Positions 7,328 to 62,672 of a stretch of DNA of 64,000 bases are shown piece after piece. A program made the position numbers and the translations under genes. The DNA is from Andalucia godoyi And28 (lineage: Eukaryota; Protista; Jakobida). Positions within the stretch are counted from its first letter, which is position 1, and each line of letters opens with the position of its first letter. Below the pieces are notes generated by a model, which made no database searches, was not told the DNA's origin, and saw only the letters and a program-made list of their open reading frames with translations. The stretch is from assembly GCA_009859145.1 (NCBI GenBank), contig VRVR01000052.1, positions 124,001 to 188,000 on the forward strand. Direction: 5' to 3'.

Positions 7328-7879
7328 TTACAATGATATGGCAGACGAAGAGATGTGATGAAACACATCAGAGTGCTCGGACACGGCGGCATCAAGATAT
7401 CGTGCGGTGGCGTTCCCTTCAACATCGTGCATATCCACGCGCACACTGGTTCTCTGGCTTGCAGCCGGTTCCTTTCCAATGTCCGTTTGCCAGTACGAGA
7501 AAGCTTCTACGCGAGACACCCCAGGCTTCAGCAACGACCGCCGACTCTCGGGCGGCACTGCTCCGATGCGATTCACGATGACTGCAATGTGCTCGGCCGT
7601 CAAGAACGTCTCCTTCCTTAGCGAGCTTGCAAGATCCTCCATGGAGGTGTCTCTTTCGAACAAGTAAAACGCAAAGCTGAGAAGCTCTTTGTAGGTCTGG
7701 TAAGACTGCACTTCTTGGTGTCTTCGTCGAAAACGCGAGAACGAGTCGACACACGGAGCACTGCGACTCACAACAGACGACACAGTCTTGAAGACATCGT
7801 CGACAGTCTCCACAGAGAGCATCGCCATCGCATCTGCACCCAGAACACCGGGAAAAGGATACCCCGTCGCAGAAGACAT
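7328..7879 (-). CDS. Hypothetical protein, possibly COMM-domain (COMMD)-like
   Basis: Part of a 280-aa ORF; from ATG 7879 it is 183 aa, typical COMMD size. Helical N-part (LLSFAFYLFE...EDLASSL) and VEAFSYWQTDIG, resembling the COMM L.D..W..D motif. Start codon uncertain. Confidence 0.4.
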   Translation of the reverse strand: MSSATGYPFPGVLGADAMAMLSVETVDDVFKTVSSVVSRSAPCVDSFSRFRRRHQEVQSYQTYKELLSFAFYLFERDTSMEDLASSLRKETFLTAEHIAVIVNRIGAVPPESRRSLLKPGVSRVEAFSYWQTDIGKEPAASQRTSVRVDMHDVEGNATARYLDAAVSEHSDVFHHISSSAISL

Positions 7880-8154
7880 GGTGTTGAACGCTTTTACTCG
7901 CAGGAAAATCGTTCTGTCCGCACGGCCCATGGGCATGGACTGAAGCAGGAGAAGAAGAAGACGATTGGAGAACATCGATTCGGTGACGCCTGTCTTTTTT
8001 TTCAAGAACCCCTCGCCTGTTGTCGCCATGCGTCGACTTCGCAGAGAAGCGTTCCTCGGGGTGCTTTTCGGGTAGTTCTGATGACTTGCTTGGCCTTGTT
8101 GTCGCCGACGGAAGAAAGAAGAACAGGAATCGGTAGCATCGGATACGTAATCGA

Positions 8155-8445
8155 ATGGCCAGCGACACACAGTATGAGGAATCCTTTCGACGGATTTGCC
8201 AGTCGTCTACTGAAGCGGCATCCGTGCTCTTCACGCCAACGATGTCCCACGTCCGCGAAGCTGAAAATCTCTGTGTATCAGACGACTTTCGGTTGCCGTC
8301 GGACGTTAGTCAGGTGGTCAAGGAGTACGTGTCAAATGGATGGCCGTTTCTGGAACAGGATCGACGAATAAGCACCTTGGAAATGAAGCTGAAAAGCCTG
8401 GCTTCTCGAATATGCGCTTTGAAAAAATCCGCAGGACACTCCTAA
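8155..8445 (+). CDS. Small hypothetical protein with C-terminal coiled coil
   Basis: 96-aa ATG ORF with protein-like composition (RISTLEMKLKSLASRI), divergent from the preceding gene. Confidence 0.35.
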   Translation: MASDTQYEESFRRICQSSTEAASVLFTPTMSHVREAENLCVSDDFRLPSDVSQVVKEYVSNGWPFLEQDRRISTLEMKLKSLASRICALKKSAGHS

Positions 8446-11400
8446 CTCCGTGCAGCCGAGATACGGTTTTTCTTTCTCCGTCAATGGATGTACCGTATGC
8501 AACTACGCGTATGGGAAGCGACATTAGTGTGCGATCCCAGCACTATGATGGGCATTCTCCGTTGCGCTCAATGATCTGGCCCCGTGCTGCCGTCAGCAGT
8601 TTTGTTCAGGCTTCATTGCTCGACAGCGGGATAGGTACCGTCACCATGGACGTTTGTGATGTGAGGAGTCCTTTCCAATCACACCCATTTTGCCCAGTTA
8701 GGTTGAAAGTACGTCGAGAACAGTGCGGTTGGTTGGGAGCTCCCCTGGGCCGGCTTCAAGAAGGTGAGCTGTCGCGATGTTCAACCAAAAAGATAATAAT
8801 TATGAAATGGTGTGGAAACAGCAGGTGTGGGGCCTTCTCAACCGGTCAGTCGATTCATCGACTATCCGCCAGCAGAACGTAAAAAGCAAACATTTCAAAA
8901 TAACGTAACAATCTAAGTGCCCCAGAAGAGTCGCAATATGTTGCGCATGCAAAATGCGGAATGCATCGAGCACAAACACAGAGAGAGAAAGAGAGAGGAC
9001 GGCGGGGAGGGGGAGAACACTGTGTAAACGACACGGTCTCGAATGGATGAAAAATAATGCACCAAATAACGATCCTCTGTCTGTCTCTTGCTGAGAAATG
9101 AAGAGAAACGTTTGACCGGCGACGCACAACATGACATCCAACCGCTCACTTGCGCGGTGTCACAATATTGTGACTCTCTCGAAAGCGAAAGGTACGCATC
9201 CCAGAAACAGAAGCAAACGGCGGAATAAAACGCATCTGTACAACAGAGACTCGTGTAAGTCTTCTGGCACGAACTACATAGAAAACAGAGCCATACCGTT
9301 TTATGAACAGCCATTTCAAATCATTTGCACAGACGGTGGCGAGCAATCCCGTGTGTTGTTTCAGATAAATGCGTCGCTCGGAAGCAGAAAATAAGGACTG
9401 TGCTTTTGACGTGCCAGCCGAGGATATTCTGCACGGGTCGTTGACTGCCGAGATTCGCCAGTTCCGTGTTTGCGCACTGTCGTTGATTGTGCAAATTATC
9501 AGATGCATTGCTCGTCGTTGATCGTGCATCCGAGGAAGACGCATCGTAATGCGCTCAAGAAAATAAGGGCTATTCCTCTCCATGTGGAAGCGGGTGTAGG
9601 GGGTCACTTGTGAGCGACAGTGCGTGGAGGCTTTGTCCCGGTCGGTGCAAGCAGTTTCTCGGGAAGACGAGTCCAGGAACGACTGCACGAAACAGGATAC
9701 GGAAGCGACATGATATGCAGCAAAGCGGTTGACAGCGCAGGTTCACGGTAATGTGCTGACTTCCGGAGGCCAGATCGATGCCTTTCATCGCAAATAAGTA
9801 TCTGCAACAAGAACTTGCAAGATTTGCAAGAAAGTCTGTCTCAGAACCAACATACCATCCGAAACGACAATTTGGTAGAATGCAGAAAAAGCCGGTGTGT
9901 CCAATGGCCACGGAGAAAAAAGCTGAATGAACACTTCGGCTCCTCATTTTGTTATATTCTCTTTTTTTTAATATTTGGGAAACGAACACGATCGTCGCAC
10001 ATTGATGAAACCTGGAGAACTGTTAAAAATGGAGGATGCACCAAAACATACTTTTGAATTTGTGCCGCTGACAACCATCAACGCTACTGGAGTAATTAAA
10101 TCGACTAAAATTTTGTAGGGGGAAGGTTATTCGTTCTGTGTTGTGACTCTGCCCACTCTCTGCAGAATTGCACATTGGGGATCGTCCTGGGCTACGGTGT
10201 GTGCTTGTTCTACCGGAGCATGTGATACTTGTTCGAAATACACTGTTGAGCGTTCTTTCACTTGCATGCAAACCAATACCCCAACGGTTTTTTCCCGCAA
10301 ATCAGCAATGCCGACAGCACAGTGTTGACGGTTCGGAATGCGCATGCGGCATCCTGCGCTCTTCTTACACTGGACGCAATTATTACTCAGAATTTTAATG
10401 CCAGAATTCATTTTGCTTCGATGCAAACAAGCGAATTTAGCATGCCACAGGCATCCTGTCGCCCTATCATTACTGTGGCCGAAGTAACAGGTACCCATCG
10501 TGATTGCTTGTCTCTATTATCTGAGTGGAGAAAGTCGCGACCGGAGTGTTGGAAATGCACGTTTCGCATTCCACGGGTAGCTAGCAAACCTGTTGGAACA
10601 GTTGGTATTACAATACGGAGTGCATCTGCCTAGGAAAATATGACTTGGGGAATCGAACGCTGTTGACACCGGTATGCGATTTCGTCGACCGAATAAGTGA
10701 CATAAGCAAACGTGCAGCAAAGCAAGAGCAGACGCTTACGTCTGTGAGAGGCGAATCCACCTGTTTGTAGCATAAACGGTGATTTTGGTATGCACTCATC
10801 ACTGCTTCATATCCTGATAAGCGTTCGTTTCCTTTTGGAATTCGACGATGCATTGCACGAAATGCAACAGAGTCGCCCGATTTGTCTTGTGTGCCGCTTC
10901 AACTTTCGGTGCTCTGTTAGATCGCTCTGTTATTGAGCTGACCATGCATTCTCCGTTTGTCATTCTGTTTTTCGCTGAGCGGTTGACTAGCTGATGATGA
11001 CCTCGTGATCGATTCCCAAGAAGCACATGCAAGGAGAGAGCCAGTGTGTGTTGAAGGTTGGCAGACCCGTGCACTTCTTCACATAGATTCCTTCCTGATT
11101 TTGCACGACATCTGCAACCGATGACGTCATCCGTGCTGAATTGTGCGTCCAGCATTCCGTCGAACATCCGAAGCCCAGAACCAAATTCTCCAGTGCAGAA
11201 ACGACGAGGCTCCGTTACTGCTGTGCTCAGAATTTTCGACGGATGGTTTAAGTTGTTTGGTCATCTGCTTTGTGTTTTGCAGTGTTTTAAATTTCCTCAA
11301 TTCAACAGTGTATCGAGTCTTAACTGCACGGTTCTTTTCAATAGTAAAACAAACAACGTCAGACAACATCGTATCGAATGCTGAACACTCGCTGGGACGC

Positions 11401-55660: not shown

Positions 55661-55750
55661 GTATGATCTGTACGCCTAGTATGAGCTGTACGCCTAGTAT
55701 GATCTGTACGCCAAGTATGAGCTGTACGCCAAGTATGAGCTGCACGCCTT
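55661..55750 (+). repeat. Minisatellite, 5 x 18 bp, GTATGA(T/G)CTG(T/C)ACGCC(T/A)(A/T)
   Basis: Units begin at 55661, 55679, 55697, 55715 and 55733. Confidence 0.92.
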
Positions 55751-55965
55751 GCACCATTCTTTTTCGTTTTGTTTGTCAGTCCTTGCGCCTCCCTCTCTCC
55801 GAGGGGAAACGTCAGTGCGGCAGACCGTACTGTCTGCATGATCTTCACGCACCCATCTCGTATAAACTGGGAGAAAAAAAGAGAAGAGGAAGAAGAAGAA
55901 GAAGTCGGAAACAGAAAAAAACAGCAAACAAAAAACGAACTGATATAATCAAAACAGAAGAAGGG

Positions 55966-58900
55966 ATGAAAGGTAGAAATCGCATGGGAATGCCGGGCAG
56001 TGTCACGAACTCGTCTGCAGTGGACCATATGGCGAGGGCGCCGATGATGTTGACGTGGATGGCGAGGATGGTGGTGCTTGGGTGGTGGTTGTGCGGTGCG
56101 GCAGCTGTTTCGGCATCGAATGTCACGTTTGGGCAGTTTAATTTCAATCCAATGCAGTCTCTGACGTTGAACCAGCCTCCCGTCTCACAGTATGGATCGT
56201 GTGCAGCGGTCGATGACAATCTGATGATGATCACTGCGCCTCAGTGGAACATTGTGTTCATCTATGTTTTTACGGACGGCTGGGTGTACAACACACAGTT
56301 TTCGTTGGTACACTATGATATTCGGTCGGTGGGGTTCGGGGTTGCGTGTGGACTGCTTCGGGTTGCACCAGGTAAGTTCAACTTTGCGGTCTCGTCGTCG
56401 GACAGCAGTACTCTGATCTATGGTACGCTTATGCTTCCGGATCCCAACGCAGAGGTAGTGCTGTCCGCAAACGTGCTCAACGTGACGGCGTTCCAGCCAA
56501 GCCAGACGTTCGGACATGGTTTGGACGTGGGCGCAACATCACTTATTGTGACAGACCCTGACTTGGATCTTGCACTGTTTGTCAATCTCGTGAACAACGT
56601 CCAGTCGACCATCCCGTTGTCCAGCTCGCCATCGGAGTATTGCCAAGGCGGAAAGTCCATTTCGGGTGTCGAAGCTGTGAACTCTACGCTTCCGAGCGCG
56701 CGTTACGTTGCGCTTTCAGCACCTCTCTGTGGGAAAGCAGTCGTGATTGTGGCATTCAACTCCTCGACGGGCCTTGGCTGGACTCGGCTTCCCGACATCA
56801 ACCTCGTTCACACTTCGGACCTACTGAGTCCTCTGTGTGTGTCTCGAGAGCTGAGTGTGGTGGTAATATCTCCAACCTTTCGGCTCGTCGATGTATACTC
56901 GTTTGATGCCGCTGCAAACGCGTTCCGTTTCGTCATCACGCGTGAGCAGGGAGCCACGGGATGCGCTGTGGCCGAAAATGCAGTGTACATCGTGAACAGC
57001 GGAATCGGACTTTCGGTATACTTTTCGAACGACTACGCCAATACTTCGATCTCGCAAGCTGCTCTGCTGCCGATCAGCATCTCAATCGGAAGCAAGTTTG
57101 GAAAGTCGGTTTCTGTCTCGAACCGGCCGTCGTTCATTAATGTCGTTTCAGGTGTTCCCGAGCAGGACCTCGCACTTGTGATTTCTGCCACGCATATTTT
57201 AGGAGGGCTGTTTTCGTCGTCGCAGATCGAACTTACCCCAACGCCGTTCGCATTCGGTGTTGGCCTCGCCACGACTTACGACGGCAAAACCACGCAACTT
57301 GCTGTTTCAGAAGGGACAACAGGACATGTGTATCTCTATTCTTCCATTCTCGGATCACACTTGTTTTCCGGCTCCCCTGTATGCGAATTCTCCAATGTGG
57401 AGGTTCGTAGCTTTCGAAAGCAAATGGTGTTTGCGCACGGAGGAAGGCTTTTAGTCTTCGGAAGCCAAAAGAGTGTGGTGCTTGGCATCCCGCAGTTTGA
57501 AGTCATAGTCTTTGACCTCGGCGCCACGGCATCCGACTGTTCAAATGTCATTTTCCGACAGTCGTACCCTTCCTCCTTCTTCTACGGAAGCGCCGTTGAC
57601 GCAAATGGACCACGGCTCATCGCTGCCGCATATGACCAGGCTGCCGTGCTTCTCTACAAGATCGATGACGCTAGCGGAACGCCTTCCGTGCGGCAGATCT
57701 GCAACATTTCCAACACCGACCGCTGCATTATCAGCTCCAGTATGTCGCTCGGGGTGGTCGCCATTTCCAGTTCAGGTTACGCATTTCTTGCTTGCGACGG
57801 CAAGAGCATCAAAGTCGTCGATGTGCTTGGCGGTGGTGGTGGTGGTGGCGGCAACGGCAACGACGACGGCAGTTGGTGCAGTGCAACGCCGACGACGACG
57901 ACGACAACAACAACGACGACGACGTTCCGACATTCGTATTCCGAGTTTTATCCCATTAATTTTGTGTTGACTTCGTCGTCGTTTGTTGTGGCAGAGATTT
58001 CGATTTCGCGCATCGTTGCGTACCACAAGCATTTCAATGGCAGTGCATTTACATGGTCGCAGGAGCCACAGGTTTTGCTGAGCAACGCCAACGACGCCCT
58101 CATCCCGCAGAATGTCGGTTCCTGGATGCAGATCACCGATTTTGTGTTGACCATTGGTTCGTATGATGCTTCACGGGCCTATGTGTACTTTTTAGAACAG
58201 TTCATCGACCCCGAGACGGGCTACGTCTCGACCACATGGGTCCTTTCCTCGTATTCCCAACAGCAAATCGAAGGATGGGGTCGCGGATTGGCGCTGGTGA
58301 ATGGAGGAATTGTTGTCAGTGCTCCGTCGCAGAATGTGGTGTACATCAGCGGCCTTGTTTGTCCTCCAGGCTTTGAGTCCAGCAGCATGTTTTGCACAAA
58401 ATGCGCGCCTGGATTTGTGAACCCGTCTTACTCGGCTGCTCCCTGCGCGCAGTGCCTTGCTGGGTACTTTTCCTTCAACGGAACGACGTGCAATCCTTGT
58501 CCAACCGGCTACTTCTCGCACACCGGGTCAGAGTCATGCACAGCGTGTCCCCCAGGGACGTTTTCGAGCGGGCTTGCAGCGCCGGCGTGTTCCGTATGCT
58601 CGTCTGGATCATACTCATCAAACTCGGGTTCGATTTCATGCAACGCATGCCCCCAGGGCTACAAGAACCGACAGCCTGGTCTCACAAGCCAAGAATCCTG
58701 TCGATCACCGGACATGGCGTTCATCTCCAAGGCCCAGACAATCGTCAGCGTCGGCTCGGTTCTGCTGTTGCTTTTTCTTCTGTTGTTTGCAGTTTCCATC
58801 GGTCCGTTCATCGCCCTGACGCTCATGCACAGGTCCGCTCGCAAGAATGTGAAGATCGCCGAGGAATGCATTGAAGAGGCATTCCAGTTTGTCAATCCGA

Positions 58901-59385
58901 CTGCCGATCCATCACCAAGTGCCGAGATGTCTGCGTTTGGGCGCGATCCACTGCGTCCACTGCTGGCCGATGGGACGGATCCGGTGAGCGAGTCTGTAGA
59001 CGACGCATCGCTCGGATCCCTGCTGACACGCGCTATCATCCCGGGTGTCGACGCCTCCAGCTTCGGCGCAGGCTCCGAGTACTTTGAGTCTGCATGCGCC
59101 CAGTTTCTGACCGACGACATGAAGCATTCTCTGCGTCGGGTGCTGACGACGATGCAGCGCGCCGACACGAAGAACTCTCCCCAAGTCGAAAAGGCACTCG
59201 ACATCATCCGCACGTCAGTTCGTGAAGGAGTCATTGCCCGAGCGAAGCTGGACCTTCGGTTTCGCATCATGGGCAAACACCGCATCCGATACATTCTCTT
59301 GTATCTCACGCTCCTTGCTTGTGTCGGCACCTGCATTCTTCTCATCGCGTACTACCAAACCGCAATCGATCGCGAACTGAACTAG
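55966..59385 (+). CDS. Cell-surface membrane protein: FG-GAP-like beta-propeller repeats, Cys-rich (TNFR/ephrin-receptor-like) repeats, TM segments
   Basis: Signal-like segment after ATG 55966/56029; repeats QYGSCAAV, TFGHGLDV, KFGKSVSV, AFGVGLA, FYGSAVD, GWGRGLAL; CxxCxxG repeats; TM near the end of the ectodomain and at the C-terminus. Start uncertain. Confidence 0.8.
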   Translation: MKGRNRMGMPGSVTNSSAVDHMARAPMMLTWMARMVVLGWWLCGAAAVSASNVTFGQFNFNPMQSLTLNQPPVSQYGSCAAVDDNLMMITAPQWNIVFIYVFTDGWVYNTQFSLVHYDIRSVGFGVACGLLRVAPGKFNFAVSSSDSSTLIYGTLMLPDPNAEVVLSANVLNVTAFQPSQTFGHGLDVGATSLIVTDPDLDLALFVNLVNNVQSTIPLSSSPSEYCQGGKSISGVEAVNSTLPSARYVALSAPLCGKAVVIVAFNSSTGLGWTRLPDINLVHTSDLLSPLCVSRELSVVVISPTFRLVDVYSFDAAANAFRFVITREQGATGCAVAENAVYIVNSGIGLSVYFSNDYANTSISQAALLPISISIGSKFGKSVSVSNRPSFINVVSGVPEQDLALVISATHILGGLFSSSQIELTPTPFAFGVGLATTYDGKTTQLAVSEGTTGHVYLYSSILGSHLFSGSPVCEFSNVEVRSFRKQMVFAHGGRLLVFGSQKSVVLGIPQFEVIVFDLGATASDCSNVIFRQSYPSSFFYGSAVDANGPRLIAAAYDQAAVLLYKIDDASGTPSVRQICNISNTDRCIISSSMSLGVVAISSSGYAFLACDGKSIKVVDVLGGGGGGGGNGNDDGSWCSATPTTTTTTTTTTTFRHSYSEFYPINFVLTSSSFVVAEISISRIVAYHKHFNGSAFTWSQEPQVLLSNANDALIPQNVGSWMQITDFVLTIGSYDASRAYVYFLEQFIDPETGYVSTTWVLSSYSQQQIEGWGRGLALVNGGIVVSAPSQNVVYISGLVCPPGFESSSMFCTKCAPGFVNPSYSAAPCAQCLAGYFSFNGTTCNPCPTGYFSHTGSESCTACPPGTFSSGLAAPACSVCSSGSYSSNSGSISCNACPQGYKNRQPGLTSQESCRSPDMAFISKAQTIVSVGSVLLLLFLLLFAVSIGPFIALTLMHRSARKNVKIAEECIEEAFQFVNPTADPSPSAEMSAFGRDPLRPLLADGTDPVSESVDDASLGSLLTRAIIPGVDASSFGAGSEYFESACAQFLTDDMKHSLRRVLTTMQRADTKNSPQVEKALDIIRTSVREGVIARAKLDLRFRIMGKHRIRYILLYLTLLACVGTCILLIAYYQTAIDRELN

Positions 59386-59543: not shown

Positions 59544-60164
59544 CTAGTTGTTCACGCGGAAGATGGCGGGTGCACAGCCAAAGTACGAGGAGAAGTCCGC
59601 GTAGGAAGCAGACCAGCAGAAGCATCTCTGCGACGAGGAGTTCGAGTCGATCGTTCCGCAGCCGTCCGAAGCGCAGATTCCAATGTGTGCTTCATTGCAC
59701 GCGACCGCAAGGTCTCCTGCAACTGCATTACGCGGGTCGATCGCAGATCCTCGGCCGCCCTTCAGTGCATCCACAACAGACGGCACATAGTCCGGGTTCG
59801 AGCCGAGCTTGCGGATTCCAGCATTCGTCAAAATGTTATTCACTGTCCCAAACCGAAAACCCACAGCCATTAGCATCTCGTTCATTCATTCATCATGAAA
59901 CCCTTGAACATTCCATTAAACTTTAAAAAGAAGAAGTAAACCACAAAAGAGAAGAGGAGAGAAGAGGAGAGAAGAGAAAAGAGAGAGAAAGAGAGAGAAC
60001 GTCATACCTGCCCATGCACAGGCCTCCACACCACCATCAGGACCATCTGCAGTCGAGTGTCCCCAGTACGCATGCATGGCCGAGTCAATGGCCGACGGAA
60101 TCGACGCCTGGACGCCAGACACCACAATCAGCGCAACAACCAACGCACACAAAACCACGCGCAT
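59544..60164 (-). CDS. Secreted NlpC/P60/CHAP-like (papain-fold) putative peptidoglycan hydrolase, two exons (60164-60008, 59842-59544), 151 aa
   Basis: Splicing gives signal peptide plus GGVEACAWAVNNILTNAGI...AVAGDLAV...AHIGIC...SNSSS, a Cys...GD...HIGI catalytic layout. Confidence 0.75.
59843..60007 (-). other. Spliceosomal intron (165 nt), phase 1
   Basis: GTATGA donor, GCTAAT branch site about 30 nt upstream of the CAG acceptor; removal restores ACAWA-VNNIL in frame. Confidence 0.85.
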
Positions 60165-60711
60165 TTCTTCTTTTCCTTCTCTCTGCAAGTAGTACCTTTT
60201 TTATGTTAAAATACAACAAACCAAAACAAAACAAAATAAAGAAGACAGAAAAGAGAAAAATCAGAACCAAGAAGCTTTCGGGATTGTGGATGTTTTACGT
60301 TCACAAGCCAATTGTGCGGAGATGCGGAGGACGTTTCTGTTCGGGGGTTTTGTTCACGATGCCCATTATTCCAATGCACGTCGGACGTTTACTGAGGTTT
60401 TCATGCAGATTTTATTATTGCGGTCGGGAACTCCGAAAGGAAGGCTTTTCTTTTTTTGGAAGATTTGACGGTGGGTTGATGGGTCATGCGGTGAAAAAGG
60501 CAGGCAGCAAAAGTCCGACGAACCCCAGATCATACCGGTAATAAAAACAGCCTGCTGTAGAAGGACTACAGCAGTTCTCCGGGTCGTCGTGTCCCGATAA
60601 CTGTGATCCTCAACTGTGGTGCGCGAGTCCTTTCGCCAAATGGTTTCGTATGATAAGCGCATGGTGCAGAGCAATCTATTGTTGCTATGACAGCACATCG
60701 GCCACGGGTGT

Positions 60712-60786
60712 CTGTGTGTGTGTGTGTGTTTGTTTGTGTGTGTGTGTGTGATAGACAGATAGACAGATAGATAGAGAGATAGATAG
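60712..60786. repeat. (TG)n followed by (ATAG/ACAG)n microsatellite
   Basis: Directly visible. Confidence 0.85.
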
Positions 60787-60875
60787 GTCTCCAGTTTCAA
60801 TCGTTCATTCGATTTTTCTTATAGACCAGGTTTTCTTTTGGGAGAAGCGCGTACGGCAGGTGAGAAAGAGAGAGA

Positions 60876-62672
60876 ATGCAGAGCGCGCAACGGCTGGCTC
60901 GCGGATTGTTTACGAGCTTGCGACGATTTGGGAATTATTCAGATATGGAAGCTCGGATTTCAAAGGCTGTGGCGGACGCAAAAAGCATCGGGGTGCTTCC
61001 TTCTCAGCAGCCAAAGCTGCCTGCATTGCGGCTGGAATGGGCAACGCTTGCTGCCGAGATTGAGAAGCAGGTCGCCGCTTCCTCTTCCTCCTCCTCCTCC
61101 TCCTCCTCCTCCTCCTCCTCCTCTTTGGCGACGGCAGCTACGAGTGCGGGTGGGATCGATGGGAAGATGAGGTCCAGGATGCACTTGGCGGTTGTGTATC
61201 GGCATGGGCTGGGGGTTGAGCAGTCGTATGAGAACGCCGAGCGCACACTGCTGCAGCTTCTTTCGTCGGAGCAGGGTGTCGCGGAAAGCACTACTTCCTC
61301 TGCTGCAGAGTCCTTTGCAGAGGTGTATTTCTCGCTGGGATCGCTGTATCTTGCCATGTCGTCGCAAATTCGCAACGACTGGGAGGCGTTTGTGCAGCAG
61401 TCGGTGTTGGCCACCATCGATGCATACCGAAGGAACCGTCAGCACAGGGGCGCACAGGATAGCCGACTGCCTCCGCAGATAGAAGAAGAGGAAGAAGAGG
61501 GAGCAAAGGGAAGGGGAGACGCCGAAAGTTCCGGCAAGGAGGGGTATGTGAGCGTACCTTCTGCGAGTGAGCCGGCGTTCTCGGCAATGGAGAGCACAGA
61601 ATGGGGCGAGCTTTTCAGAAAACGAGATCTCGTGTCTGCAGAAGTTCAGGCGATCTTGCGAGAAAACAGGCAGCAAAAGAAGCGGAATTCAGCCGACAGA
61701 GTCTCTGCGTTGAAGTCGGCAGAATCTAGCTTTTCCAGCGAGTTTAGCGAGCGGTATTCGAAAGCAAAGAGGCAGGCAGCGTTCATGCTCTTGGAGGCCG
61801 TGAACCGCGGTTCGGCGGCCGCGTGCATTTTACTCACAGAGCTCTTTCCGTCGCAGCGCTACCGATTCTTGGACATGGCTGCCTCTGCGGAATACGGATA
61901 CTATCCACCCGCGGTCTATGAACTGCTGAGCCCGCTCATGACGGACGAAGCCGCTTCGGTGGCCGATTCCGAAAAGTCGCTGCTGCTCCAAGCCATTTCG
62001 CATCATCCGTCCAATGGCGATCTGCTTTTCCTGCTTTCGTTTGTCTGTCTTTCGTCCAAGACAACTCTATCCATTCATGAAATGCAGTCCATCTCGCCGA
62101 CCATTGCAAAGGACTGCGCAGCGCACAGCAGCAGCGACGCCGACGCCGTTGTTCGAGAGTTTGGTTTTGCAGTGCTGAAACACTGCGCCTCCGTTCTTGG
62201 GCACGGCCAAGCACAGTGGCTGTTATCGCGGTATCTGTTCGCAGGAAACCTGTGTACCGCCGATGAAAAGGAGTCGTGGACGTATCTTTTACGCGCTGCG
62301 GACCAAGGATACCCCGATGCGCTGTTGGAGGCCGCGCAAGCATTGTATCACGGAACCGGCGGTGGCGGTGTCGTCCGTCGTGATGTTGATGCTGCGTACG
62401 AGTACTTTGAAAAGGCTGCATACGTGTGCGGGATTGGCGAAGCGTTCTGCGCGCTCGCCGTGATCCACTACAAGGCGGAAAGCCTGCGGTATGCGCCAAG
62501 CCCCGATTTTCGCAAGGCGTTTCATCTCTACGAACGAGCATCGGAACTCGATTGCCCGCTTGCGTGGACCGCACTTGCAGACATGTATGCACAAGGCCGA
62601 GGCGTCGCGCAGGATCAAAAACTAGCAGCCTACTTTGCAAAACTCGCCCACGACCATTCCATGTACGCCTGA
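60876..62672 (+). CDS. Sel1-like repeat protein, probably mitochondrial
   Basis: Arg-rich, acid-free presequence MQSAQRLARGLFTSLRRF; Sel1 repeats such as LAVVYRHGLGVEQS, LADMYAQGRGVAQD, AFHLYERAS. Confidence 0.85.
   Translation: MQSAQRLARGLFTSLRRFGNYSDMEARISKAVADAKSIGVLPSQQPKLPALRLEWATLAAEIEKQVAASSSSSSSSSSSSSSSLATAATSAGGIDGKMRSRMHLAVVYRHGLGVEQSYENAERTLLQLLSSEQGVAESTTSSAAESFAEVYFSLGSLYLAMSSQIRNDWEAFVQQSVLATIDAYRRNRQHRGAQDSRLPPQIEEEEEEGAKGRGDAESSGKEGYVSVPSASEPAFSAMESTEWGELFRKRDLVSAEVQAILRENRQQKKRNSADRVSALKSAESSFSSEFSERYSKAKRQAAFMLLEAVNRGSAAACILLTELFPSQRYRFLDMAASAEYGYYPPAVYELLSPLMTDEAASVADSEKSLLLQAISHHPSNGDLLFLLSFVCLSSKTTLSIHEMQSISPTIAKDCAAHSSSDADAVVREFGFAVLKHCASVLGHGQAQWLLSRYLFAGNLCTADEKESWTYLLRAADQGYPDALLEAAQALYHGTGGGGVVRRDVDAAYEYFEKAAYVCGIGEAFCALAVIHYKAESLRYAPSPDFRKAFHLYERASELDCPLAWTALADMYAQGRGVAQDQKLAAYFAKLAHDHSMYA

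Follow-up and report, generated by a model that had tools for sequence, protein, structure and literature searches.

Does a free-living jakobid carry its own enzyme for cutting bacterial cell walls, and, if so, from where did the gene come? The question is raised by a short locus at positions 59,544 to 60,164 of a 64,000-nucleotide stretch of the Andalucia godoyi And28 genome (contig VRVR01000052.1; the whole stretch is referred to here as the window). A first-pass annotation of the locus had proposed a hidden two-exon gene for a secreted cell-wall amidase of bacterial type. We identified this gene as ANDGO_01209. On the evidence below it is, with good but not complete confidence, a nuclear gene derived from a bacterium or phage that encodes a secreted NlpC/P60-type wall hydrolase, probably directed against bacterial walls.

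The gene lies on the minus strand. Its spliced coding sequence (CDS) of 456 nt encodes 151 amino acids (aa) and runs from an ATG at 60164, which is the earliest in-frame ATG downstream of a stop, to a TAG stop codon. The features of the gene are given below in window coordinates; the conservation values refer to 164 representatives of the domain family.

60008..60164, minus strand: exon 1, 157 nt, from the start codon through the signal peptide and the N-terminal stretch of the domain as far as ACAWA and the first base of Val53.
60105..60164, minus strand: the part coding for the signal peptide, residues 1-20, MRVVLCALVVALIVVSGVQA; cleavage after VQA is predicted, as read from the sequence.
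60018..60020, minus strand: codon (TGT) of Cys49, the predicted catalytic nucleophile, 98% conserved, at the N terminus of helix 49-59 (DSSP on the structural model).
59843..60007, minus strand: intron of spliceosomal type, 165 nt, GTATGA...GCTAAT...CAG, phase 1, in codon 53.
59869..59874, minus strand: GCTAAT, a candidate branch-point motif that starts 32 nt before the intron 3' end and leaves 26 nt to the 3' splice site.
59544..59842, minus strand: exon 2, 299 nt including the TAG stop, with the remainder of the catalytic domain.
59712..59714, minus strand: codon of Asp96 in the GDL motif, 98% conserved, aligned with the GDL of CwlO and MepS.
59685..59687, minus strand: codon of His105 in the HIG motif, the predicted catalytic base, 99% conserved, aligned with the H of HVGIY in CwlO and MepS.
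59640..59642, minus strand: codon of Asn120 in the SNSSS motif, the predicted third residue of the triad, 99% conserved, paired with an Asn of CwlO by the profile alignment.

The list of open reading frames (ORFs) for the window contained only two fragments at this locus, 59916..60188 (90 aa) and 59544..59885 (113 aa). Removing the intron that the first-pass annotation had proposed joined them into the 151-aa product, with all of the intron signals and protein motifs that it had described. The spliced product matched the deposited model ANDGO_01209.mRNA.1 (EukProt, "hypothetical protein") with 100% identity over its 151 aa, and the exon junction restored ACAW/AVNN without a gap, as in the homologues that are encoded by single intronless ORFs. 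Chance occurrence of a GT..AG pair thus does not account for the splice. The two-exon structure stood, but the gene was concealed from the ORF scan only and was already publicly annotated, without an assigned function.

The intron has a GC content of 39%, compared with 58% for the exons, and is CT-rich; its first third (window 59947-60000, minus strand) is a microsatellite-like tract of TCTCTC and TCTTCTC units. As the first-pass annotation had stated, it falls directly after the catalytic-Cys motif, where it interrupts the codon of Val53, four codons past Cys49. Two stops lie in frame within it, so an unspliced transcript would give a truncated protein that lacks His105. The length of 165 nt fits the mean of 151 bp in A. 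godoyi, whose compact genome of ~20 Mb has few intron-bearing genes and GT..AG introns only (PMC7050145). The annotation of that genome used RNA-seq/PASA, and the culture was non-axenic and grown on bacteria (PMC7050145). A single copy of ANDGO_01209 was found within the window, and a paralogue, ANDGO_03334, which is 75% identical, is located elsewhere.

An artefact (DNA of contaminating bacteria, a pseudogene or a GT..AG pair that occurs by chance) would account for the lack of one uninterrupted ORF, and this is the only point in its favor. The ORFs around the gene code for a kinesin motor, DUF3689 and Sel1-repeat proteins, CNOT11 and a 1240-aa Ephrin_rec_like membrane protein, and the codon usage of the gene is host-like: the GC content at third codon positions (GC3) was 0.645 versus 0.56-0.63 for the neighbors, and the correlation of relative synonymous codon usage (RSCU) with the neighbors was 0.71, compared with 0.45-0.56 for pieces of neighboring genes of the same size. 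Because of its eukaryotic neighbors (kinesin and CNOT11) and host-like codon usage, the gene is not contamination, which agrees with the first-pass annotation. The identity to the deposited gene model, the gap-free homology across the junction, the conserved catalytic residues and a ratio of nonsynonymous to synonymous substitutions (dN/dS) of about 0.16 in the clade of closest homologues also argue against an artefact. We rejected contamination and a pseudogene on the neighbors, the codon usage and this dN/dS, and the probability that we leave to an artefact of any kind is negligible.

What the gene encodes was addressed by structure prediction and profile searches. The AlphaFold2 model, based on 16 homologues, had a pLDDT of 91.9 and a pTM of 0.83, with low values only in the first 20 residues (pLDDT 56-59), which were modeled as a lone helix. 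When the model was compared with the PDB by Foldseek, CwlO (8wt3) was the leading match (E = 3.3e-4), followed by MepS/Spr, Clostridioides difficile Acd and RipA/RipB, the top ones with a probability of 1.0. Lower matches included the T6SS (type VI secretion system) effectors Tse1/Tae1 and Tae3 (E about 0.02-0.06) and CHAP endolysins, and nearly all of the 50 matches listed were of the NlpC/P60, Tae or CHAP type. Against predicted viral structures (BFVD), the best match was a lysin-domain protein of Synechococcus phage S-CAM7 (E = 1.4e-6, TM 0.67), and the matches after it were CHAP and NlpC/P60 phage lysins and tail lysins. In sequence space, a profile of 45 domain sequences reached CwlO at an E value of 2.9e-5 and MepS at about 0.008, and its alignment set the GD..H..N of the family on the GDL..HVGIY..N of CwlO. 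The matches in PHROGs were weak (phrog_34252, an endolysin, at E = 3e-4, and phrog_37890). Relatives with 42-50% identity to the query exceed Pfam's gathering thresholds for NLPC_P60 (24.8-29.2 bits; threshold, 23) or CHAP (27.9 bits; threshold, 26); the NLPC_P60 and CHAP matches of relatives begin at the catalytic Cys, as do the Pfam matches of P0167. Some bacterial members in the same range of identity have been named "NlpC/P60 family protein" by NCBI or JGI. The predicted fold, the profile matches and the threshold-passing relatives thus place ANDGO_01209 in the NlpC/P60-CHAP superfamily (Pfam clan Peptidase_CA), as a member of a subfamily without a curated model.

The predicted fold is papain-like, of the NlpC/P60-CHAP kind that the first-pass annotation had recognized, and the candidate triad is Cys49-His105-Asn120. 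In the model, Cys49 starts helix 49-59, His105 stands just before strand 106-109 and Asn120 lies within strand 116-121. The nearly invariant conservation of Cys49 and His105 bears out the catalytic pair named earlier; Gly45, Gly95 and Gly107 were conserved in 100% of the representatives. Asn120 is likely the third catalytic residue, as judged from its conservation and its place in the profile alignment.

The pre-protein has two parts, a signal peptide and one catalytic domain, rich in cysteine and about 130 aa long. Its N terminus, as read from the sequence, is of the classical signal-peptide type (MR, 13 hydrophobic residues and VQA followed by S), and a signal peptide starts every complete member of the Andalucia-type clade described below. 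Secretion is thus predicted, as it had been in the first-pass annotation. This N terminus also bears on an endogenous role, such as remodeling of the flagellate's own wall or cyst, or a task in a bacteria-like mitochondrion. The mitochondrial genome of A. godoyi is the most bacteria-like known (PMC7050145), and the protein is uncharacterized, both of which would leave room for such a role. However, the hydrophobic signal peptide is not an amphipathic presequence, the text of the genome paper mentions neither peptidoglycan nor NlpC (PMC7050145), and neither ANDGO_01209 nor ANDGO_03334 is present in its mitochondrial-proteome supplements. We rejected a mitochondrial role on the N terminus and the absence from these supplements, and we consider an endogenous role of any kind very unlikely.

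The bacterial and phage relatives bear on what the domain does. An exhaustive profile search of 1.84 billion cluster representatives returned 771 relatives, most of them multidomain and 499 with E < 1e-10; a scan of metagenome DNA with the query gave only two distant loci, and a viral scan gave three weak ones. The domain was nearly always found at the extreme C terminus of proteins of 99-1464 aa (164 proteins). The prokaryote loci, which were taken from species-representative genomes, were mainly cyanobacterial (Leptolyngbya, Nodosilinea, Stenomitos, Phormidium, Adonisia and Chroococcidiopsis), and others came from Patescibacteria, Myxococcota and Eremiobacterota, with a best identity of about 52%. 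On cyanobacterial plasmids and chromosomes, the domain forms the C terminus of a protein of 742-771 aa that belongs to a recurrent gene order of the type IV secretion system (T4SS): TrbI/VirB10 comes first, then a small ORF, this protein and a VirD4/TraG coupling protein. Plasmid pLBX of Leptolyngbya boryana, Leptolyngbya PCC 7375 and one contig from a metagenome all show this order. The pLBX protein of this type, WP_172410512.1, carries the NCBI annotation "glycoside hydrolase family 19 protein." Further bacterial members were fused to PG_binding_1 or to T4SS pilin/TrbC domains, and P0143 (1464 aa) combined a phage tail-protein match (phrog_52) and three trypsin-like domains with an endolysin-like N terminus. 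In the T4-like cyanophage ACG-2014e, the domain is part of a 968-aa "endolysin/GPD" protein that adjoins baseplate-hub genes. In ten multidomain bacterial members, neither a Pfam nor an NCBIfam model covered the domain. Together, these contexts point to local opening of peptidoglycan.

At a metagenomic T4SS locus (L002, 7846-10106), the hydrolase occupies two overlapping ORFs, 7846..9612 and 9528..10106, unlike the Leptolyngbya loci L023 and L054, each of which has a single ORF of 742-771 aa. Either a frameshift or an error in assembly could explain the split.

Several points weigh against our assignment of the protein to wall hydrolysis. The 151-aa query had no match in Pfam, NCBIfam or the sequences of the PDB, even at E <= 10, so the family assignment rests on profiles, relatives and the predicted structure. 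The Foldseek E values against the PDB were modest (1e-4 to 1e-2), with TM values of 0.5-0.6. The best bacterial identities, only about 50%, are spread across Cyanobacteria, Patescibacteria and Myxococcota and so point to no single donor lineage. The NlpC/P60 superfamily also includes acyltransferases, phospholipases and other amidases, and peptidoglycan is therefore not the sole possible substrate.

This diversity, together with the position of the query below every curated model, leaves room for an enzyme of the same fold and origin with a substrate other than peptidoglycan: an acyltransferase or phospholipase of the LRAT/HRASLS type, or an amidase or protease that acts on some other molecule which the flagellate or its prey secretes or bears on its surface. 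Two architectures without a wall context point the same way, a 1240-aa protein with an nSTAND1 NTPase and the domain (P0100) and a 491-aa protein in which the domain follows a DUF4231/SLATT module with two transmembrane segments (P0026); P0100, P0026 and P0143 may be conflict-system or tail-associated effectors. However, all of the best structural and profile matches were peptidoglycan endopeptidases or lysins, and no LRAT-type match was seen. The fusions to PG_binding_1, the GH19-annotated protein, the phage baseplate proteins and the fixed place in the T4SS operon also argue against such a substrate, which we regard as improbable. Peptidoglycan remains the substrate that we propose.

As to the bond that would be cut, we favor endopeptidase chemistry over that of a MurNAc-L-Ala amidase, because the closest solved enzymes are DL-/DD-endopeptidases of the stem peptide. 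The word "amidase" in the first-pass annotation, if taken in the MurNAc-L-Ala sense, was therefore not favored.

The closest homologues formed an Andalucia-type clade of 13 sequences with 82-83% bootstrap support in neighbor-joining (NJ) trees of 135-208 sequences. Besides ANDGO_01209 and ANDGO_03334, it contains eleven proteins, which come from metagenomes or read assemblies and are 60-75% identical to the query. Where neighbors of these genes were visible, they were eukaryotic: cytochrome b561 and GT61 on contig L001, an EBP sterol isomerase on L058, a contig with two clade members in tandem, and a histidine phosphatase on L003, where the introns begin with GTGAGT. The L003 homologue (about 9000-10140), a three-exon gene on a GC-rich eukaryotic metagenome contig, has a long Thr/Gly/Ser-rich C-terminal tail that is absent from other members, and another clade member stands after a poly-Asn/Gln tract. 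The dN/dS was 0.16 for the L058 tandem pair and also 0.16 for the window gene versus L001, a comparison in which dS was saturated. By these estimates the clade is under purifying selection.

One member, P0012, is carried by an AT-rich and compact contig (L004, 1-8292; SRR32784131_193), and has a signal peptide and an additional Cys-rich N-terminal stretch. Its neighbors encode C2H2 and RING finger proteins, a DUF6165 protein and a DnaE-like polymerase that is 31% identical to that of a 484-kb uncultured phage. The contig is virus-like and could derive from a phage or from a virus of eukaryotes; such an element could have been a vehicle for the spread of the gene.

Outside the clade, two further eukaryotic homologues were found. 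The protein of Carpediemonas membranifera (P0036, 172 aa; JAHDYR010000003.1; L059, 8001-8624) is encoded among genes for tubulin, TTL and ubiquitin. That of Paratrimastix pyriformis (P0031, 230 aa; JAPMOS010000034.1; L060, 8001-8794) combines a signal peptide, a saposin B domain (SapB_1 and SapB_2, both above threshold) and the NlpC/P60-like domain, and from its sequence looks like a fusion of a membrane-active and a wall-cutting part. Saposin-like proteins are lysosomal or antimicrobial and membrane-active, and so the fusion fits an antibacterial or digestive role, by analogy. Carpediemonas and Paratrimastix, like Andalucia, are free-living bacterivorous flagellates.

The eukaryotic proteins also differ from the bacterial ones in their cysteines, and the first-pass annotation had been right to point to extra ones. 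Cys101, Cys126, Cys128 and Cys142 were present in 71-100% of the eukaryotic group (the 13 Andalucia-type sequences and the Carpediemonas protein) but in only 0-2% of bacterial members, whereas Cys109 and Cys114 were common to 72-75% of the bacterial members. Cysteines were lost in pairs: P0007 and P0036 lack Cys101 and Cys142, and P0013 and P0015 lack Cys109 and Cys114. This paired loss suggests disulfides between Cys101 and Cys142 and between Cys109 and Cys114, and the four extra cysteines probably make two disulfides.

Hundreds of bacterial and phage clusters were found, versus a handful of eukaryotes with a patchy distribution, and a bacterial (or phage) origin of ANDGO_01209, as proposed in the first-pass annotation, fits this distribution. 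The NJ tree (136 columns) was unrooted; the direction of transfer was therefore read from the distribution. The same annotation had placed the gain of the intron after the transfer. This is likely, but the introns of the homologues, listed here as codon and phase in Andalucia numbering, complicate the history.

A. godoyi: 53:1, after CDS nt 157.
Carpediemonas: 52:2 (42 nt), after nt 155; two short introns flank a 5-nt micro-exon at codons 41-42.
Paratrimastix: 51:2 (47 nt), after nt 152; one more near codon 131.
L003: 35:1 and after codon 129; both GTGAGT, after AYWG and after CFCW.
Most Andalucia-type genes: no introns.

The micro-exon of Carpediemonas was worked out by hand. A two-intron model was rejected since it did not reproduce the deposited protein; the 5-nt micro-exon (GCCCC) explains that protein and restores a conserved Pro. 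In Paratrimastix, one intron splits the Trp codon of ACAW, and the second intron, as drawn in the deposited model, lacks GT..AG ends. The introns of the three lineages fall within 5 nt just past the catalytic Cys codon, with the 42-nt Carpediemonas intron 2 nt upstream of the Andalucia position, and no two sites are identical. Under uniform random placement such clustering has a P of about 0.008, in a test that was post hoc. The history may therefore be less simple than a transfer followed by intron gain: the pattern fits both a series of transfers with a hot spot for insertion and one origin after which the intron slid.

A single ancient acquisition before the split of Discoba and Metamonada, or a later spread between eukaryotes, possibly by a virus, would make the Andalucia intron a slid descendant of an older one. 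The homologues in Carpediemonas and Paratrimastix, the near-coincident introns, the clade member on the virus-like contig L004 and a C-x-C-W motif that is common to all three lineages but present in 1-2% of bacterial members are in line with it. However, no intron site is identical, most of the Andalucia-type genes are intronless and the introns of L003 are elsewhere. The NJ tree has Paratrimastix close to bacterial sequences, away from the Andalucia clade, and joins Carpediemonas to that clade as its sister with a bootstrap of only 30%, and word-index searches found the EukProt label on the two ANDGO proteins only, the Carpediemonas and Paratrimastix members having come from the exhaustive search only. 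We therefore consider this history possible but rather unlikely. Equally tentative is the notion of an excavate family, in which the secreted peptidoglycan hydrolases of Jakobida, Fornicata (Carpediemonas) and Preaxostyla (Paratrimastix) would go back to one old acquisition or to movement between eukaryotes, perhaps by way of an L004-like virus, with the Cys-adjacent intron shifted by 2-5 nt. If true, it would either provide a rare marker that connects Discoba with Metamonada or document an instance of intron sliding.

For ANDGO_01209 as a bacterium- or phage-derived wall hydrolase, we propose the following course. The gene would have passed from a bacterium or phage into a eukaryote; there it would have taken on the codon usage of the host and gained an intron, a signal peptide of eukaryotic type and the four extra cysteines, and it would have been duplicated to give ANDGO_03334. 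The enzyme would enter the secretory pathway and reach the food vacuole or the medium, where the extra disulfides may stabilize it. Cys49, activated by His105 and oriented by Asn120, would then cut peptidoglycan at an amide bond, either of the peptide stem or of the cross-link, and the walls of prey or of nearby or competing bacteria would be weakened or digested.

Two features of the surroundings were noted in addition. Downstream, the gene for the 1240-aa predicted membrane protein (window 55663-59385, plus strand; Ephrin_rec_like/TNFR-like Cys repeats with poly-Thr and poly-Gly runs) is convergent with the hydrolase gene, and the two stop codons are 158 bp apart; the first ~100 residues of the 1240-aa ORF as listed look like upstream read-through. 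Upstream, a 711-bp divergent spacer separates the hydrolase gene from the Sel1-repeat gene (60876..62672) and contains a (GT)n run followed by GATA/GACA repeats (window 60716-60790).

On our reading, a jakobid, together with Carpediemonas and Paratrimastix, joins the short list of eukaryotes with domesticated bacterial wall-cutting cysteine hydrolases, a pattern already known from ticks and other animals with Dae and from Trichomonas with NlpC/P60. ANDGO_01209 becomes a candidate for how a free-living bacterivore breaks the walls of its prey, and the saposin fusion of Paratrimastix suggests a combined attack on membrane and wall. The source subfamily, with 771 representatives and ties to cyanobacterial and patescibacterial T4SS and to cyanophage baseplates, is not in the curated libraries and merits a family model of its own. 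The near-coincident introns are a small but unusual data point on intron evolution.

Our full-text literature searches found no paper that links jakobids to such an enzyme. The nearest parallel in a protist is Trichomonas vaginalis, whose NlpC/P60 hydrolases were laterally acquired and shown to act on bacterial peptidoglycan (PMC6299479, PMC10461829). In both cases a protist has acquired a bacterial NlpC/P60-type cysteine hydrolase. The Andalucia protein, however, is placed in another subfamily, one that lacks a curated model, and has no PF00877 match of its own; apart from its signal peptide and additional cysteines it consists of the catalytic domain alone, and its host is a free-living jakobid.

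The domesticated amidase effectors (Dae), such as tick Dae2, derive from the Tae effectors of the T6SS (10.1101/2020.04.10.036376). They resemble the Andalucia protein as small, secreted, papain-like enzymes of bacterial origin that were domesticated by eukaryotes, and they cut peptidoglycan, as the Andalucia protein is predicted to do. The structures of Tse1/Tae1 and Tae3, however, matched the Andalucia model well below the housekeeping NlpC/P60 enzymes. We rejected an identity with Dae/Tae because the bacterial relatives are T4SS and phage modules, found in T4SS operons, in pilin or PG_binding fusions and in phage baseplates and not in T6SS loci.

The hydrolases of cyanobacterial T4SS, such as that of pLBX, have the same domain with about 42% identity and the same Cys, Asp, His and Asn. 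They differ in being large and multidomain, with the domain at the C terminus and the gene between those for VirB10 and VirD4, and they lack Cys101, Cys126, Cys128 and Cys142. Their presumed task, on the analogy of VirB1 and of bifunctional hydrolases of the TraG/PrgK type from conjugative plasmids, is to make way for the secretion machine through the wall of their own cell. The cyanophage lysins (ACG-2014e YP_009134510.1, S-CAM7 and phrog_37890) have a homologous domain that is 29-32% identical to clade member P0012, but here it lies within baseplate or tail proteins of 632-968 aa that serve phage entry.

The solved enzymes CwlO, MepS/Spr and RipA (PDB 8wt3, 7v6s, 2k1g and 3s0q), which are DL-/DD-endopeptidases, have the same fold, the same order of Cys...GD...H...polar residue and a significant profile match. 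They are only 15-22% identical to the Andalucia protein, with only the C-terminal half alignable by sequence, and the third catalytic residue, which is His in MepS, is predicted to be Asn in the Andalucia protein.

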